This document shows positions 39,687 to 48,113 of a stretch of 64,000 nucleotides of DNA, piece by piece. The position numbers and the translations under genes were made by a program. Positions within the stretch are counted from its first letter, which is position 1; each line of letters starts with the position of its first letter. The notes below the pieces were generated by a model. That model saw only the letters and a list, made by a program, of their open reading frames with translations. It was not told where the DNA came from and did not search any database. The stretch comes from Pelomyxa schiedti (taxonomy: Eukaryota; Protista; Evosea), in NCBI GenBank assembly GCA_020536535.1, contig JAHLWZ010000721.1, forward strand, positions 111,846-175,845, in the 5' to 3' direction.

Positions 39687-42600
39687 TTATCTTCTTTCCC
39701 ACAGACACAACAACACCAACAATGGTGCAACCAGAGTGTAGAGGCAAATGTGGGAAAATGAGGCTGCAGTGCTTACACTGTCACTGCCGATGTTTGTGCC
39801 GGATGAGTCATCTGCTGATCCGGATGGTGATGGTGAAGATATTACAGCGGATTGGAGACACACTCTGGCGTTGTTCATGGCTGTCCATATTTCGTCTTCA
39901 GTCGAGGAGCTGGAAGCAAACTCGAACGGGAAGAGGAAGAACAGGGTGGTGTTGCGGTCGTTACGTTCCACGGTCCACTTGTAGTTGGTTGCTTCTGTGA
40001 TGGTGACATTTGGTTCAAAGTGCCTGTTGAGGATGATCGCGGGGCCTTCTGGTTCCCACAGTTCCATGGAATCCCCCATCCACCTGTTTAGAGTGAAAGT
40101 GTTAATTGGGATGGTTGTTCGGGAGGTAATATCAAACCATGTGCCGAATCCGAAATTCGAGGAGTAGAAATAGAGGCCGGAACCTCGTTGCCAGTAGTTG
40201 GAGTATGGAGCTGGTGGTGTGGCGGAGTGCACCAGTGTATCGGTGCTGTCATATACTACCAAGATATACTCAAAATCCACATCACCAGTCAAGGATGTGA
40301 AATCCAGCATTCGTGTGAGTATGAATGGCGTACCGCAGGACACGTGGGTGGGGATGACGAATTCAAAAGTGGCGTTGAAGACTCCTGGATAATGGGCCAA
40401 GGCACTCACACTGATGGCACTTGAACTGGATGAAATCCGTGTAACGGTTGTGGTGGAAGGCGTCATCCACCATGAATGGTCACTAGAAGAGGGAGTGAAC
40501 ACGACCCTGGCCTGCAGTTCTGTAAGCACTTGTTCAGTAGAGCCTGCAGGTGTATAGGAGATTGTGCAAAAATACGAAGACGAGGCAGAGGATGGGAAGC
40601 AGGCTCGCATTTTGCCAGATTCGGCACAATACGGTAGTGTGAAATTTTGAGATGGTTCTAGGTATGCCAAGTCGAGGTATGGCTGATATGACCAGATAAC
40701 GGGATGCTGTGCACACTCGGAATGGAGGGAACACACAGTGGGGTTTAGGATGGAAGCTGCCTTGGCAATAGGTGGCCAGACATCTTACACACGAGTGAGA
40801 CAGTACGTTGGGGTGGGAACTTGTTACCATCAGTTACATTGACAAAGCCGTAGTTACTATTTTCAGGGAATGTAGAAGAAATCCCAAGTGCAGGCTTGAT
40901 ACCAAGAGAGGAATATATTTAATTGTTGCATTACTGGGTATATTCCTAGCACACCTCATCAACATGCATGAAGAAAGAGTCCCCAACAAGGAAAGGTTGA
41001 CTCATCATCATAGTTTGAAGAAGCGTATAGCATTGTGCTCGCTGAGATTGGTAATCCACACGCATTCCAGCTCCATTGGAGCTTGGTAGCCCTTCAGAAA
41101 GTCAGGCAAGGTAGTAAAGTAATTCCTTCACCAGCATCGAGGCCTGGGTATCCCCATTCCGTGATCATGTAAGGTTTGTCACCACTCAACTGATACCAAC
41201 TCCTCATGACCTCAATGACACTGTCAGGAACCCCAAAGTCGGGCTCAATTGAAGGGTAATAATTGAAGGTGATAACATCGCAATATTGTGCTGAAGAGCA
41301 AATAAGTATGAACCAGGACATTAGTTTTAGAAACTAACCTGCAATGTCTAAAATGTCAGGGGCAGACCCAGGAAATCTTGTGCACAGATACAAATGATTT
41401 GGATCATGCAGAGAAAGAGCTTGCTTTATGCCTTGAAAATATTTCTCGGCCACTAGTCGTATGAAATCCCTTTAGAAAGGTGACTCGAAATAGAGAGTTT
41501 TCTCAAGCTGCCTTGTGACAGATTCTGCCCAATCAGTGAGAGGATCTGTAGGGCTTGTATTGGATAGCAAATCGTCTGCTGAGGAAACTGATACCCCCCA
41601 GCCTTCATAAAACTTGTTTGAGAAATCGATAGGTATCTCCTCTTTTAAAAATTGAACCCAAGCTTGTTTTCCTGTGTGATTTGATGGCTTTGTCCAGACA
41701 GTATTGAACATGCACCAGGTGGCCCAGCAACTCCAGACTGGATGTCCCCACCTGGGAATAACATAAGTTTTTTTCGCTCATTGATTGTAAAAACCATTGT
41801 AGTTCGTTATCGACATAATGCCCTATAACCCATGGATCGTCTTTATATGAGTCGGAATCTGAAAATGTCACTCGCAGATAGGGTTCCCAATTCTTTATTA
41901 GATAAGTGCATTATTACTTGGCATGGATTAGGACACACAGGATCAAACACATTGGGAAATCCTGTCCAGGTTATTGGGGGAGCCAAGTTGGAGACATACT
42001 GGGCAAAGGAAGTTCCTGGATCATGAGAAATCTACATACAGTCATTTCACAAAATGGAGAGAGAATTAATACCCACTGTGTGAGCAAACGAGTTGTGCTC
42101 TAACCAGTCACTGTGCCCACTGGCAAGGGTGTTGAACCCCCATGCAGAAAGTCTATCCATTTGTACTTTCCCCCAAGCTTCAGAGCTGGTTTCAGCATTA
42201 TAAATGCAACTTTTCACAATTTTCATACCTATCGTTGTACTTAATAAAGCAGTTGTCGTGATAGGGTATAGTTCCCAGCGCCTCACAGGCGTGTACCCAG
42301 TAGTTCACATGCTCCATTGCTACCATGAAAAATAGATTTCCGTGAGGATCGATCAACCTTTGTTTAATTTGCATACTGGATGTGCACCAATATAAAGGAA
42401 GGAACATACCACCATTTTCCATCCACTTTCTTAACATGGAAAAATCCTGTACTCTCTTGCTTTGGTAGAGAGGTGCAGGCGATATTGGGAAAAGGTGGAA
42501 ACTGCTTTGTTATGTTAACAGAGTGGGAAATGGAGGCCGTGGCATTGTCCCACTCTACAGATGCAGTCCCAGTGGATAAAGTAGGAGCACCGGAGTTAAC

Positions 42601-43441
42601 GGCCTGGGGCTGATTTATGTGGTTACATGTGAAAACTGAGGAAAAGATTCTCACATTTGTCAAGTTGTAGGAAATGTGTACTAGTTGTTCCCCAAGGGAT
42701 GAAAATACATACGAATGAAGAATACTTGGTGGCTGTATCGTAATGTTGAGGCGGTAGGGTACATCATATTCCCAGTCCAAGGACCCCTTCAAATTTGAAA
42801 TAGCCAGTTTAGTGGAGATTATTGCTGGAAGCTGGATGACATACATTCCACGAGATGACATCTCCGTCATCGCCTTGGTTGTTCCAGTTTGAATCGCGCA
42901 TCTCAGCAAATTCCACAAAGTGATCATAACCATCTGAAGCAGGACTCTCCACCAACTACCGCAAAAGTGTTAATAACAATCACCCACCATCCTTGAAATC
43001 ACGCCAACAACAAAAACTCTAAAATTACTCCCAAAAAAGCCAGGAGTTGGGGGACAAACTTGCAGTGCCCAGAAGTTTTCAGTGTCCCTCATAAATGCGA
43101 TGCCAGCGACCATCCAACTTGAAGTCTTGCCACTTCTGCCACGTATTATCACGTCACACGCGAAACTTCCATGGTCAGTGTTGCCGGCAGTTTCGAATTT
43201 GGAAAAAGCACGCTCGGGCCCCACATAAGTCAGCACTCCCGACTTCACTTCGAATCCCTAGTGCACGTTAACTGCTGGGGATACTCTCCATCAACAACAA
43301 CAAAAAAAAAGTCACATAGTCGAGTGGCATCCATGAAGGGGAACCATCGGACCCATCGGGATATGAAAAAGTGTCCTCGTAATACTGGTCGCAAGAGGCG
43401 ACCACAACAAACAAACCCAACAAAAGAACCCCACCGCACAT
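39687..43441 (-). CDS. Secreted, probably GPI-anchored GH50/beta-agarase-like glycoside hydrolase, many introns
   Basis: Signal peptide MCGGVLLLGLFVVVASC. Motifs TGFFHVKKVDGKWW|LIDPHGNLFF, RLSAWGFNTL, FPNVFDP, DDPWVIGHYVDNELQW, DPNHLYLCTRF, CDVITFNYY, KPYMITEWG and ENSNYGFV. Ends in a Ser-rich linker plus hydrophobic tail. Confidence 0.85.
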
Positions 43442-43777
43442 AATTTTCGTTTTCGCCGACAACGAATTCTTCCACCGAGCACAACGGAACACCACGCGGG
43501 AAAAACCCGCCGAACTTTTTCCGTTTTTCGGTTCGGTGGCTGGGAAGTGCCTTTTTGTCGGCCCTCCATGGAAGGAAAGCCGTGCCTCAGAGTTATCTCG
43601 TGCTTGTACAGCATAAAATTGTTTTTGTGTGTCTTGAGTTACATGGATCATTGGATGTTGAAAACATCTTGCAAACTGGCCCACTGTGTGGGTGTGTAGT
43701 GTGTGCCTCTATTTTTCTCCATTGGGACTTGGATGGTGGAAATACAAGTTCAAATGCCCTCTTGGCAAATTGCAAAG

Positions 43778-45608
43778 TCATACAGTTGTTAGTACACAGG
43801 GATGAGAACGCTCCAGCTGTGTGAGGAAATTCGGTGGGAAGGCTGCTCTCTCAAAGAGGCATATTCCTCTTAGAGGGTAGGCACCATACAACCCAGGTGT
43901 CAGAAGCTCTTCATATTCCAGCATTTGCTGCTGGAACTTCTGTCGTGTTTGTTCTGGTGTGGATGCCCCCACATCCGGAAAATAGGCCAGTTCACCAATG
44001 ACGTGAACGCTGTTGCAGCCACTGCTACGTAGAGCTTCCTTACAATGTGACTGCGCCCATATAAGGCGATCCTTTGCTGGGGAGTCCTGTGTTGTTTTCA
44101 CCAATTAGTTGGCAAGAAGAAGAAAGTAGAACTGACTGTTTGTAGGAAATATACCGCCGTGTATTCATTATTCTCCATCGTTTGAACTCTGCCAGATTCC
44201 AATAGGGTCTTGGTATCCATTCCAAGGTTACTCATAGCCTGAAGTGTGCCGTCTATTCCTTTCCGTGAACGAACCATCAGAAACCCTGCTCCGGCATCCA
44301 GACCTGCTAGTAGCATCTGCAGTGTTACACATATGCCCATTAGCGCATTATCATATGTGAAGCAGGTATGTGTATGCTCCTTCAGTTGGTGCAGTGCCGT
44401 AGCTGGTGATACTATAGGTCTATCAACTGAACCAAGCTCGAAGTGAAGGTACTGCTGTGGTGGGACTGCAACTGTAGGGAGTGCCGATACAGAAAGCATC
44501 CCACCATTGCTCGTTTCAAAGAAAGTACTGACTGGTGCACATGACGAAGGAAGAGGATCACCTGTCTCAGTAAGATAGCCACTTATTGTTGCCGAAAGTA
44601 AAGAAAGAACTGAAGACATTTTTTGACAGGACGGTTCAGTGGAGTCAATCTCTTTTTGGAGTGCAGTTCTTTTCAAAGAAGAAAATTAGATAAATTAAGA
44701 CTGGTAGGGAAGTCGTACCTATCCCCACTGTTATGTAATAAGTTAGATATTAATTGAAGTTGGCTTGCTAAATTAGCTAGTAGTGTGCATGTGTCCGCAA
44801 GAGCTACCCCTATTACTAGTGAGCCATTGGTTAACTCTTTTTGTTAAAAACCTAGACATCTTAGAGGTTTGTCAGAGGACGGGCACAAAGTTCCATCACT
44901 CGTATTTGAATTACCCAGTAAAGTCTGCACACTGGCAAGACCCTATGTACTGGGTGAGGTACTGACTAATAACCACAAAGCATACATCAAGCCAGCCGCG
45001 CATATGTAGAGGCTCACTGAGAGCGACTTTGAAAGTTCTAGCAACGTCGAGGGGTTTGCCAGGTAGAAGTGTATGGCAAGTCATTGTTCCCATCAACATT
45101 TGACCTCTTTGAGGGGGTCTTCGTCTTCCCCCCTTTGGGTTGATAGTCACGTGCACAGGGTAGTCACACCCAGCTGGAAACAGCAGTTAGAGGGCAGCTT
45201 AATCCTGGGGAAAAGTGTAAGGCATACTCAGAGAAGACAGTACTGCTTCTCGATTTTTTATAACACGTCCTTTCACCACCACAGATAAAACAGAGTCAGA
45301 ACAGCCCAGTTCCTGCCCAACATGTCCTGCCAAATGACTGACAGTAGCCTGTATGATTTTTTTTTTTTTTTGTTTTTTGTTGGTAACAAGGAAAAGCCAG
45401 AAATACTTTGTACGATTCTTAGGGTGTTTTTTGGTTTTTTGGGGGAGTTCGGGTTGTTTGTTTTGAGCTTCCAGATGGGCCATACAGTAGGGGGCAAGGA
45501 GACAGAAATATTACGCTCCTTACACTTTACACCTCCGAGGGCGTCAGTGGCATCACTTCTGGGCGACAATACTACAACGCGGTACGTAAGAGTACAGCCA
45601 CCAGCCAT
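43778..45608 (-). CDS. Ubiquitin-like domain + helical region + MEDS-like sensory domain protein
   Basis: Exons 1-3 give ISVSLPPT|ATVSHLAGHVGQELG..LSVVVKGRVIKN.EAVLSSL..PVHVTINPKGG (beta-grasp pattern). The C-terminus has HTCFTYD..GLDAG..LGMDT..LLESGRVQ..ALRSSG..VHVIGELAY..MLEYEELL..GICLFE..F..L.RSHP (MEDS pattern). Confidence 0.7.
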
Positions 45609-45881
45609 TTCGTTCTGACGGGTGGATCTTTGGTTTGTTGTGAAATGTGCTTTGATCACGTCAAGGAGGGGAGTTGGTGCTCAACGATCTAAGGACTTTT
45701 CGGGGAAAGCTCTTTTGGTGATGTGCCCGGATTCTTAGGAATTAAAATTTTTACTCTTTATGGGGAAGTGAAACGCTGGAACCGCGTTATTCCTCCCAGC
45801 GCCTTCCTTAATTTGCGATTACGTGCACAGGCCTCCCCAAGTTGTCTCAAACCTTCATAAATGTACAACAGGCATGATGCC

Positions 45882-48113
45882 ATGTGTGTGTTGCTTTTTT
45901 TGGTTTGCGCGATATCAACAAGTGGTGCCGAGGAGAGGGGTACTCTGTGGGCAGAGACTGAGGAGGTTGGCGTGTGGGGTGATGATCAAGTGCAGCCCCT
46001 GAGGGAGTTTTATATCGGGAGTGATGCACAGGCTGGGGAGGGTGATGGGTCAATTGGCGACCCTTACAACCTCGACTCGGCAGCTGCTAGGGGTATGGAC
46101 ATGTCACACAAACTTTTTTGCGAATTTAATGTACTGTTTGACAAGTAATATCTTTGGATAGGATTTGGGCGGCCAGGCGACACTTATTGGGTTCTTGGAG
46201 GAGATTATTTGCCTACCAAACAGGGCTCTTTTCTTATGAAATGCGATGGAAATGCAACAAATCCATGCATATTCCGTTGTGTTCCTGGTGCAAGATGCAC
46301 ACTTCGGTACAGATACAAGGCTAGGGGTGATGACAAAGGATGGAACATAGGCTTATTATCCTTCCTACAGAGGAATGATTCAGATATATGCTAATTACTT
46401 CTGGCTTTGGGGTATGGAGATTTCAGACCCAAATGCACAATACAGTTCTGATGCTGATACATCCTGCCCGATAGGGGTATGGAAGAAAAAGATTACAATG
46501 TTTTTCAGTTCTGACTGTAGATTTGGGGAGCCCCCAGCATGTACCGAGGATGCCACATCATAAATAATTACATTCACGATGTATCCAGTGACTTTGTCTT
46601 TAGAAATGGGATGTGCAGTTACGGTGATCTCCAAGTATGGGGCCATTTCATTCTTCCCTAATTAATTACTTGTTACCTTCCTAGACAACGATTTACGGAA
46701 ATATCGTTTTTGGTGAAGGTCACAACATTTACGTTCAGAATGATTATGAAGCTGGGGGATATAAATATGTTGTTAATAACATGGTACTAGTTTTCTTCCT
46801 ATTTCATTTCATGATTGCTGTAGTTTATGGATGTGCGTGGAGGATCAGATTACGTTGAAACTCCCAGTGGTGATTCTGTCAAATTTTTCAATGTTCATGC
46901 ATATGTCGAGTCGGCAACTCATGGAATGGGAAAGCTGAGTGGCATGTACTTCGAAAACAATATTATAAAGGATGGACGTTTTCTTGTTGGTGGGCTACCT
47001 TCTATTATTCACTTCCATTGTAATGAAATCTCAGGTAGTGACTATGAACCAGATCACCATCATGTAGTAAATAGAAATTACTTCTCCAATGCACGCTGTC
47101 AAGTTGGTTACAGTGTACCGGCACAAGCAATTGTGTCCAACAATAAACTTGTGTGGTCTCCGTTACAGTTGGAGTTAATACTTCCAATCCAAAGCGGCAT
47201 TACTGAAGAAATACAGGCACACTTGGGGGACTGGGGAAACTCAGTACGCTAGTTGGCAAACTGAACAAACGGCAATAACTGGAAATATGGTAATATGTCC
47301 AGAAAGTATGTTCCCTCTTTCATGTTAACACTGAAGTCATTTTAGATACTACCGATTTGGATTACGCGCAGCACATTCGTTTTGGCACTGATGCTTTTAC
47401 AGGCTCTGGCATTCAACAGTCGACCAGTATCAGGCCTGATGATGACGTAGATGAGAATATGTACTCCTCTGAGTTTTCCATGTATTTCAGTGTCGAAGGT
47501 GACACTGCCAATGGTGGCGAGACTGAGTGGAAAGACCTCTCAGAAAGTCATGGAAACGGATTTGATACCAGTGTGTTCCTTTTCGAAACTGGCATCCCGT
47601 CCCGTATCTCACTAGCCACATAGACGGTATCTTCACCTACGAAGTGGCGGCAATTACTGCAAACGTTATTCCAAATGATTACGATTCCTCAATGTTTTAT
47701 ATAGCCATCTTCCGGCTTTCATTTTCCACACCCTTGGTGCACCTCGATTTGTGCACTTACATGAGCGAAGGTTCGTGGATACCACGCTTTACATCAACTT
47801 ACTTGCAGGCAGAACCCTGGCAAAGTTATGTTGTGTCACACTACCGAGACCTATACGGAGAGGAAACCAGTGGGTCCACAGGTGACTGTAGTGAAGTTGA
47901 AATCAACATGGGAACTTCCAAGTAAGCCGGCATTTCCGCCTCACCCCGTCATCAACCCCAACCAGGTTTGAAGCCTATGTTCTCAAATTGAACGAATCCA
48001 GTTACATTCCACACGGGAGCAGTTCTCCTCAACCCAGTGCCGCACACCCATTATCAATACCCTCATTGTTCCTGGCACTGACATGTTACCTACTCTTTTT
48101 ACTGTGCCTCTAG
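45882..48113 (+). CDS. Secreted, GPI-tailed right-handed parallel beta-helix protein (polysaccharide lyase/hydrolase-like)
   Basis: Signal MCVLLFLVCAISTSGA, then FYIG..GDGSIGDPYNL..PGDTYWVLGGDY, GNATNPCIFR, IYGNIVF..HNIYVQN and YFENNII. Hydrophobic C-terminus SLFLALTCYLLFLLCL. Confidence 0.7.

Follow-up and report, generated by a model that had tools for sequence, protein, structure and literature searches.

Has a sensor domain that is known from bacteria and archaea been joined to the ubiquitin system in an anaerobic amoeba? The question is raised by a locus in a 64,000-nucleotide (nt) stretch of Pelomyxa schiedti DNA (contig JAHLWZ010000721.1, positions 111,846 to 175,845; the window, in whose coordinates positions are given below). 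From the letters alone, an initial annotation had proposed here a gene in which a ubiquitin-like domain (UBL) ending in Gly-Gly is fused to a methanogen/methylotroph DcmR sensory (MEDS) domain. We conclude, with a probability of roughly 0.8, that the locus is a genuine nuclear gene of P. schiedti. Its product would be a cytosolic protein of 478 amino acids (aa) in three parts: an integral, uncleaved UBL at about aa 5-95, a MEDS domain at aa 304-472 and, between them, some 200 aa of helical linker that include two conserved helices with Cys residues. It would act by docking through its UBL. Observed directly are the two domains, how the 3′ half is divided into exons, where the coding sequence stops, and the architecture that the family conserves.

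Gene structure

The gene has seven exons on the minus strand (45608..43778) separated by GT-AG introns. Its ends are as first proposed, with the start codon at 45608-45606 and the stop codon at 43780-43778, and the product ends in HPCVLTTV. Exon borders come from mapping a public protein for this locus, KAH3759008.1 (P0044), onto the window, with split codons assigned to the exon that holds the codon's first base. The joined protein was analysed by reference to that record (P0044:1-477), and earlier searches were made exon by exon. The exon structure of the initial annotation needed revision: exon 1 is longer (to 45486, adding the second UBL strand), and there are two further exons of 91 nt (44942-44852 and 44809-44719).

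The MEDS domain

The MEDS pattern reported initially is borne out by Pfam, in which PF14417 matches aa 304-472 over profile positions 1-161 with 49.4 bits (cut-off 29.8; E 6e-13). The domain, at 43799..44373, is split by the last intron. Exon 6 (44155..44668; aa 205-376) encodes the second linker helix, a beta segment and the N-terminal half of the MEDS domain, with the motif H-x-H-x-C-F-x-Y at aa 303-310, while exon 7 (43778..44086; aa 377-478 and the stop) encodes the C-terminal half, with its GE, EYE, C-L-F, FPP and HP motifs. Searched exon by exon, the same profile matches collinearly, at positions 1-70 in exon 6 (18.6 bits) and 91-161 in exon 7 (29.3 bits). Both exons are covered by RNA contigs (three for exon 6).

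A further view comes from a hidden Markov model (HMM) of the family that was built without this locus and run over all 2386 open frames of the window. The two MEDS exons are its top two matches (131 bits for exon 6, and 109 bits), exon 2, which belongs to the UBL, is the third-best open frame, and the linker exon is among the next few. These four exon matches are collinear, lie on one strand and fall within 1.8 kb. Furthermore, this copy was aligned with four MEDS proteins of prokaryotes, which have scores of at least 160 bits or carry HisKA/HATPase domains, and the residues H305, G331, G354, Y374, Y434, E435, C452 and H471 do not vary among them. The signature His, Glu, Cys and His residues of the domain are thus among those kept in this copy.

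The fold comparison that had been suggested along with the initial annotation was run on paralogues, with AlphaFold-type models and Foldseek, and it agreed with both domain assignments. For MEDS we used paralogue P0004, which is 41% identical to this copy in the domain and whose AlphaFold model has a predicted local distance difference test score (pLDDT) of about 90 across it. Foldseek matched this model to FlaH, KaiC-CI and RecA-like chains with E about 1e-4 (FlaH/KaiC-CI 1.6e-4; template modelling (TM) score on the target 0.45-0.48). As modelled in the paralogue, the MEDS domain of this gene family is a KaiC/RecA-like alpha/beta fold, in agreement with a published classification of MEDS as inactivated KaiC (‘iKaiC’; PMC5847659). 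A reading of this copy's sequence found no Walker A motif (GxxxxGK[ST]). Pfam searches of the 477 aa gave only MEDS and weak UBL matches, and no HisKA/HATPase, REC or HTH output domain.

The ubiquitin-like domain

The UBL is encoded by the first three exons. Exon 1 (45486..45608; aa 1-41), placed by the P0044 mapping, contains the start codon, strand beta-1 (LTYRVVVL), a long loop and strand beta-2 (RNISVSLP), and a GTATGG donor lies directly 3′ of 45486. Exon 2 (45228..45348; aa 42-82), placed by the same mapping and by the family alignment, contributes helix alpha-1, strands beta-3/beta-4 and a V..GR motif that is invariant in the family; it matches the paralogue loci in tblastn with E 0.002-0.014. 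A shorter exon 1, ending after ALGG at a GGT|GTAAAG site, was rejected, as it would remove beta-2, whereas the longer exon aligns to the Rad23 UBL.

A phmmer search with aa 1-105 of this copy against all PDB sequences returned four matches. Three are the Rad23 UBL (E 0.15), aligned over residues 30-78, which come from exons 1 and 2, and the fourth is 2daf, which we take to be a UBL-domain protein. A profile of the family's N-terminus, searched against PDB, placed only UBLs on top (ubiquitin-like proteins, ubiquilin-3, Rad23, ISG15 and BAG1), with a best E of 0.005. A model of aa 1-92 of paralogue P0003 (pLDDT 83) superimposes on the UBLs of ubiquitin, ubiquilin-3 and BAG6 with TM scores of 0.73-0.91 and root-mean-square deviations of 1.2-1.9 Å. 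Judged by this paralogue model, the N-terminus of the protein family is a ubiquitin beta-grasp. The beta-1/beta-2 loop is unusually long in our copy. As short exon pieces were misplaced as rows of a protein alignment, they were excluded from the alignment used for folding. Of the homologues from Mastigella, P0008 (aa 1-105) found no match among PDB sequences with phmmer and P0023 only weak ubiquilin matches; for these two, the family profile suggests the UBL assignment.

One coding sequence

Two real domains could still belong to two genes. Exon 3 (44986..45173; aa 82-144) is a single open exon that carries the last UBL strand, beta-5 (VHVTI), then Gly96-Gly97, RRRPP, a conserved MGT motif and the start of a W-x-x-G-L motif. 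Exon 4 (44852..44942; aa 145-175), taken from the public model, with a 43-nt intron on one side and a 42-nt intron on the other, completes this motif as W-x-x-G-L-x-x-[LV]-Q-x-L-x-G, a form common to P0002, P0003, P0004, P0005 and P0039. Exon 5 (44719..44809; aa 175-205) encodes the first conserved helix with a Thr-Cys motif (ALADTCTLL), and its placement follows from RNA contigs over 44719-44788 and from conservation in the family. The two 91-nt exons, 4 and 5, thus separate the UBL exon from the large MEDS exon. From the W-x-x-G-L motif on, the linker aligns collinearly (E 2e-9) to P0002, an open reading frame (ORF) of a Mastigella eilhardi cDNA, and P0002 continues into a MEDS domain. In the P0004 model four helices are predicted between UBL and MEDS, two of them paired in a long hairpin, and a small beta segment comes after them; the two Cys-containing linker helices are conserved across the family alignment.

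Other ways of joining these exons were considered and set aside. Splicing of exon 3, ended at 44915, directly to 44668 is ruled out by RNA contigs, which have a 50-nt intron at 44718..44669 preceded by an exon at 44719-44788 or beyond. Enumeration of all in-frame GT-AG links from exon 3 to exon 5 had offered the splices 44986>44834 and 44931>44815. These are superseded by the two short introns of the public model, which we prefer because they restore the family motif W-x-x-G-L...L-x-G and the result aligns to the Mastigella cDNA.

The same order, strand and spacing of UBL, linker and MEDS recur at the P. schiedti paralogue loci on contigs C666, C869, C817 and C729, and at C666 and C869 the deposited model is one protein in each case (467 aa and 456 aa). 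Three Trinity ORFs of Mastigella, P0008 (457 aa), P0023 (446 aa) and P0039 (436 aa), have a UBL-like N-terminus and a MEDS domain in one cDNA frame. At locus L011 of a third eukaryote (ENA ERZ21831265), a UBL exon lies ~600 nt upstream of MEDS. In all, the architecture is shared by at least four further paralogues in P. schiedti and by three M. eilhardi cDNA ORFs. The bridge in exon 3, the linker alignment to P0002 and this recurrence favour one protein, and the claim that UBL and MEDS are both real and lie in one coding sequence was upheld.

The same question can be put to RNA contigs, available from three single-cell libraries that belong to one study. Spliced contigs for exons 5-7 are present in all three libraries, so the locus is expressed. 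They confirm the 50-nt intron and, in two of the three libraries, the 68-nt last intron (44154..44087). In library X1 an alternative donor 18 nt downstream (44137-44154) gives a last intron of 50 nt and adds six residues (VYFLQT) in a MEDS loop.

Several points weigh against our reading. None of the RNA contigs from the three libraries covers 44796-45900, and hence none lies on exons 1-4, so the 5′ half of the gene rests on other evidence. The check for a single transcript therefore succeeded for exons 5-7, the stop codon and the 3′ untranslated region (UTR) and failed to reach the UBL exons; a single transcript is what we infer, and a full-length one was not among the contigs. The Pfam check was likewise mixed: MEDS is above its cut-off, but the ubiquitin family PF00240 scores only 16.1 bits (E 0.0096; cut-off 25.4) on aa 1-100 of this copy, and 16-18.6 bits on its paralogues. 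The beta-grasp model is that of paralogue P0003 and not of this copy. Mastigella P0002, the closest relative, is called a complete ORF yet starts just after the UBL position, and some family members may thus lack a UBL. Finally, ligand binding and proteasome docking are proposed by analogy.

Some of these observations could instead indicate two genes, namely a gene for the UBL and linker and a separate MEDS gene, whose transcript would start near 44800 and whose product would begin at the Met at 44619 (P0001, 257 aa). The RNA contigs indeed stop at 44738, 44750 and 44788, P0001 is an ORF called from one of them with its start at that Met, and P0002 has no UBL. However, three contigs that end at three sites, all within exon 5, resemble the fading coverage of low-depth Smart-seq2-type data and not a transcription start. 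The contig behind P0001 (X3, the shortest) has a 1-nt insertion at 44618, in an A-run homopolymer just upstream of its Met, which would break the upstream frame. The extra base probably arose by a slip of the polymerase or of the assembly where depth was low, and it would explain why an automatic ORF call starts at an internal Met; the most likely account of the ‘MEDS-only’ P0001 is thus that ORF calling on a truncated RNA contig produced an artefact. Moreover, the open frame of exon 5 contains no ATG and is conserved, as are exons 3 and 4, and UBL and linker are physically linked in exon 3. We consider two genes very improbable and retain a single UBL-MEDS protein.

The Gly-Gly motif and possible cleavage

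The sequence PVHVTINPKGG followed by RRRPP, from which the UBL was initially recognized, is encoded in exon 3 as described, with the codons of Gly96-Gly97 at 45132-45127. This suggests a further alternative, also raised in the initial annotation, in which the protein is a precursor: a cut after Gly96-Gly97 would free a ubiquitin-like modifier and a linker-MEDS protein, as in ubiquitin-ribosomal fusions or FUBI-S30. The tail of ubiquitin reads HLVLRLRGG, and HVTINPKGG sits against it. Gly96-Gly97 lies four residues after beta-5, the same spacing as for G75-G76 of ubiquitin, and the next residue is Arg and not Pro.

Conservation in the family argues otherwise. The Gly-Gly is absent at this position from 10 of the 10 other aligned members. 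The residues aligned to it are KI in P0004, PD in P0003 and TR in P0005, and, by ungapped reading, SV in the C817 copy; KI is also what an ungapped alignment gives for the nearest paralogue in the genome. Mastigella homologues have Pro-rich continuations without Gly-Gly. An apparent tblastn match of ‘INPKGGRRR’ to ‘INKPSRR’ at paralogue locus L010 is in the wrong frame, the true frame reading ‘SPRKIT’. The tail also lacks the Leu-Arg-Leu-Arg context that ubiquitin-type proteases use, and one chance Gly-Gly in a dozen or so copies would be unremarkable. Since none of the relatives has the Gly-Gly, the family alignment makes an integral, uncleaved UBL most likely. Cleavage after Gly-Gly, one option of the initial proposal, is not supported and appears quite improbable.

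Comparison with known proteins and proposed mechanism

Compared with prokaryotic MEDS proteins (PF14417; DcmR, methanogen histidine kinases and EtnR-type regulators), the protein has a profile match above the cut-off, the signature H, G, G, Y, YE, C, FP and HP residues and, as modelled in a paralogue, a KaiC/RecA-like fold. It differs in its Pfam score, which is 49 bits as against about 160 for typical members, and in its identity to them of 20-26%. Its MEDS domain is C-terminal where theirs is N-terminal, its partner is a UBL without a kinase, receiver or DNA-binding output, and it is encoded by a eukaryotic gene with introns. The N-terminal part recalls proteins with an integral UBL (Rad23, ubiquilin/Dsk2, BAG6, midnolin, UBLCP1 and parkin). 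Like them it has an N-terminal beta-grasp, modelled in a paralogue, followed by a C-terminal module; its best sequence and fold matches are the UBLs of Rad23, ubiquilin-3, BAG6 and midnolin; and the amoebal family has no conserved cleavage site. However, it has no UBA, BAG, phosphatase or RBR module, and its C-terminal module is a sensor domain of prokaryotic type.

By analogy with these two groups, the MEDS domain, which retains its candidate residues for a ligand or a metal, may bind one of these, the ligand being a small one, or else a partner protein; prokaryotic MEDS sensors have been proposed to act in this way. To our knowledge, ligand binding by MEDS is a prediction only, even in the prokaryotic family, where it was reportedly made by Anantharaman and Aravind in 2005, as cited in PMC5847659. 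The UBL would take the place of the prokaryotic histidine-kinase or DNA-binding output and might dock the protein, or its cargo, onto receptors for UBLs, for example those of the proteasome, as do Rad23, ubiquilin, BAG6 and midnolin. The helical hairpin could be a spacer or a dimerisation element. If the MEDS domain does still bind a ligand, the protein would be a compact case of an acquired prokaryotic sensor rewired into the ubiquitin-proteasome world.

A broader proposal is that the Pelomyxidae have made the MEDS sensor into a eukaryotic signalling device with a UBL output, in which docking to the proteasome, or to another receptor for UBLs, would be under the control of a bound ligand, perhaps a metabolite that is exchanged with the methanogenic and syntrophic endosymbionts. 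The 6-7 paralogues would then correspond to several ligands, and the new Gly-Gly might also release the UBL in this copy. We regard this extended scheme as unlikely.

Family and origin

The locus lies on a 176-kb scaffold and has GT-AG introns, as expected of a eukaryotic nuclear gene. The P. schiedti genome, of which we searched 52,367,397 bases in 5337 contigs (the published single-cell assembly has 52.4 Mb in 5337 scaffolds; PMC8887013), contains 6-7 paralogues, this gene included. Six further family loci lie on contigs C729, C666, C869, C817, C1071 and C891. Of these, the C1071 copy is truncated where its contig ends, and C891 gives a weak match (27.6 bits); for the C817 copy there was no deposited protein among the search matches.

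Beyond P. schiedti, the searches found the family in M. eilhardi and in the eukaryote of ENA ERZ21831265 (run ERR12015700), which has about 38-40% GC and at least two family loci (L011, 3391-4863; L013, 3536-4531). A HMMER search with P0002 against 1.84 billion representatives gave 35 proteins at E <= 0.001. Those with names, as far as they were looked up, come from Pelomyxa or Mastigella in every case; several of the others are fragments of exons that belong to a single ENA/Logan sample, and two are repeat proteins that match spuriously. Pelo_8467 (KAH3759750.1), Pelo_13107 (KAH3745498.1) and Pelo_9288 (KAH3758906.1), and Mastigella DN5117, DN1805, DN2423 and DN1462, share with our protein the three-part architecture, the linker motifs and the MEDS residues. 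They are 20-39% identical to it over the full length and are deposited as hypothetical proteins or unnamed ORFs. The Gly-Gly after the UBL, the long beta-1/beta-2 loop and a mis-merged public model are found in this copy alone.

A phylogenetic tree places DN5117 (P0002) as the orthologue of this copy, with support 96/91, and contains Pelomyxa-Mastigella orthologue pairs. The family thus diversified into several lineages before the genera split, and is no recent gift from the present symbionts. Prokaryotic MEDS proteins appeared in the P0002 search with E about 1e-4 only and 20-26% identity, a distance so great that no donor can be named. Given that every MEDS protein described to date is prokaryotic, a lateral, prokaryotic origin of the amoebal MEDS is plausible. 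Prokaryotic contamination is ruled out by the introns, by paralogues on large eukaryotic scaffolds and by cDNA in the sister genus.

The initial annotation had considered that the host might be an anaerobic amoeba with methanogen symbionts, and this is correct: P. schiedti (Archamoebae) is anaerobic, and its symbionts are two bacteria and Ca. Methanoregula pelomyxae, a methanogen that is essential to it (PMC10579272). The family therefore occurs in amoebae that depend on a methanogen. The view that no UBL-MEDS architecture had been described was also sustained. A literature search found no paper on MEDS in a eukaryote or on a UBL-MEDS protein, the papers it returned that use the MEDS term being all on bacteria or archaea, and the Pelomyxa papers PMC8887013 and PMC10579272 mention neither MEDS nor ubiquitin. 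The amoebal UBL-MEDS family is thus public, under hypothetical or unnamed entries and, for this copy, a wrong name, but is not described in the literature searched. MEDS has so far been treated as a purely prokaryotic sensor module, whereas the family described here is eukaryotic, expressed and intron-bearing.

The public gene model and the downstream gene

The public protein for this locus, KAH3759008.1, is a 1448-aa protein named ‘Beta-galactosidase bgaB’ that spans 39690-45608 on the minus strand. It splices 43784 to 43384 (intron 43783..43385) and continues through a downstream hydrolase-like gene. Were this model right, UBL-MEDS would be the N-terminal part of a giant fusion with a glycoside-hydrolase-like protein. 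However, all three RNA contigs run unspliced over 43784-43778 and retain the stop codon and ~190 nt of 3′ UTR. In addition, the 478-aa product ends where all family members in the alignment do. The downstream gene starts at an ATG of its own (43441) and then encodes a hydrophobic signal-like peptide; in the merged model both are lost within the intron. We therefore conclude that the product has 478 aa and that the GenBank model merges two neighbouring genes; a genuine 1448-aa fusion is scarcely credible. In the downstream 971 aa (P0044:478-1448; 39690-43384) Pfam found no family at E <= 1, so the name ‘beta-galactosidase’ has no Pfam support. With the locus annotated in this way, domain-based surveys would miss or misread the UBL-MEDS gene. 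The 3′ UTR itself extends over 43590..43777 on the minus strand, RNA contigs X1 and X2 ending at 43590 and 43600 in library adaptor sequence.

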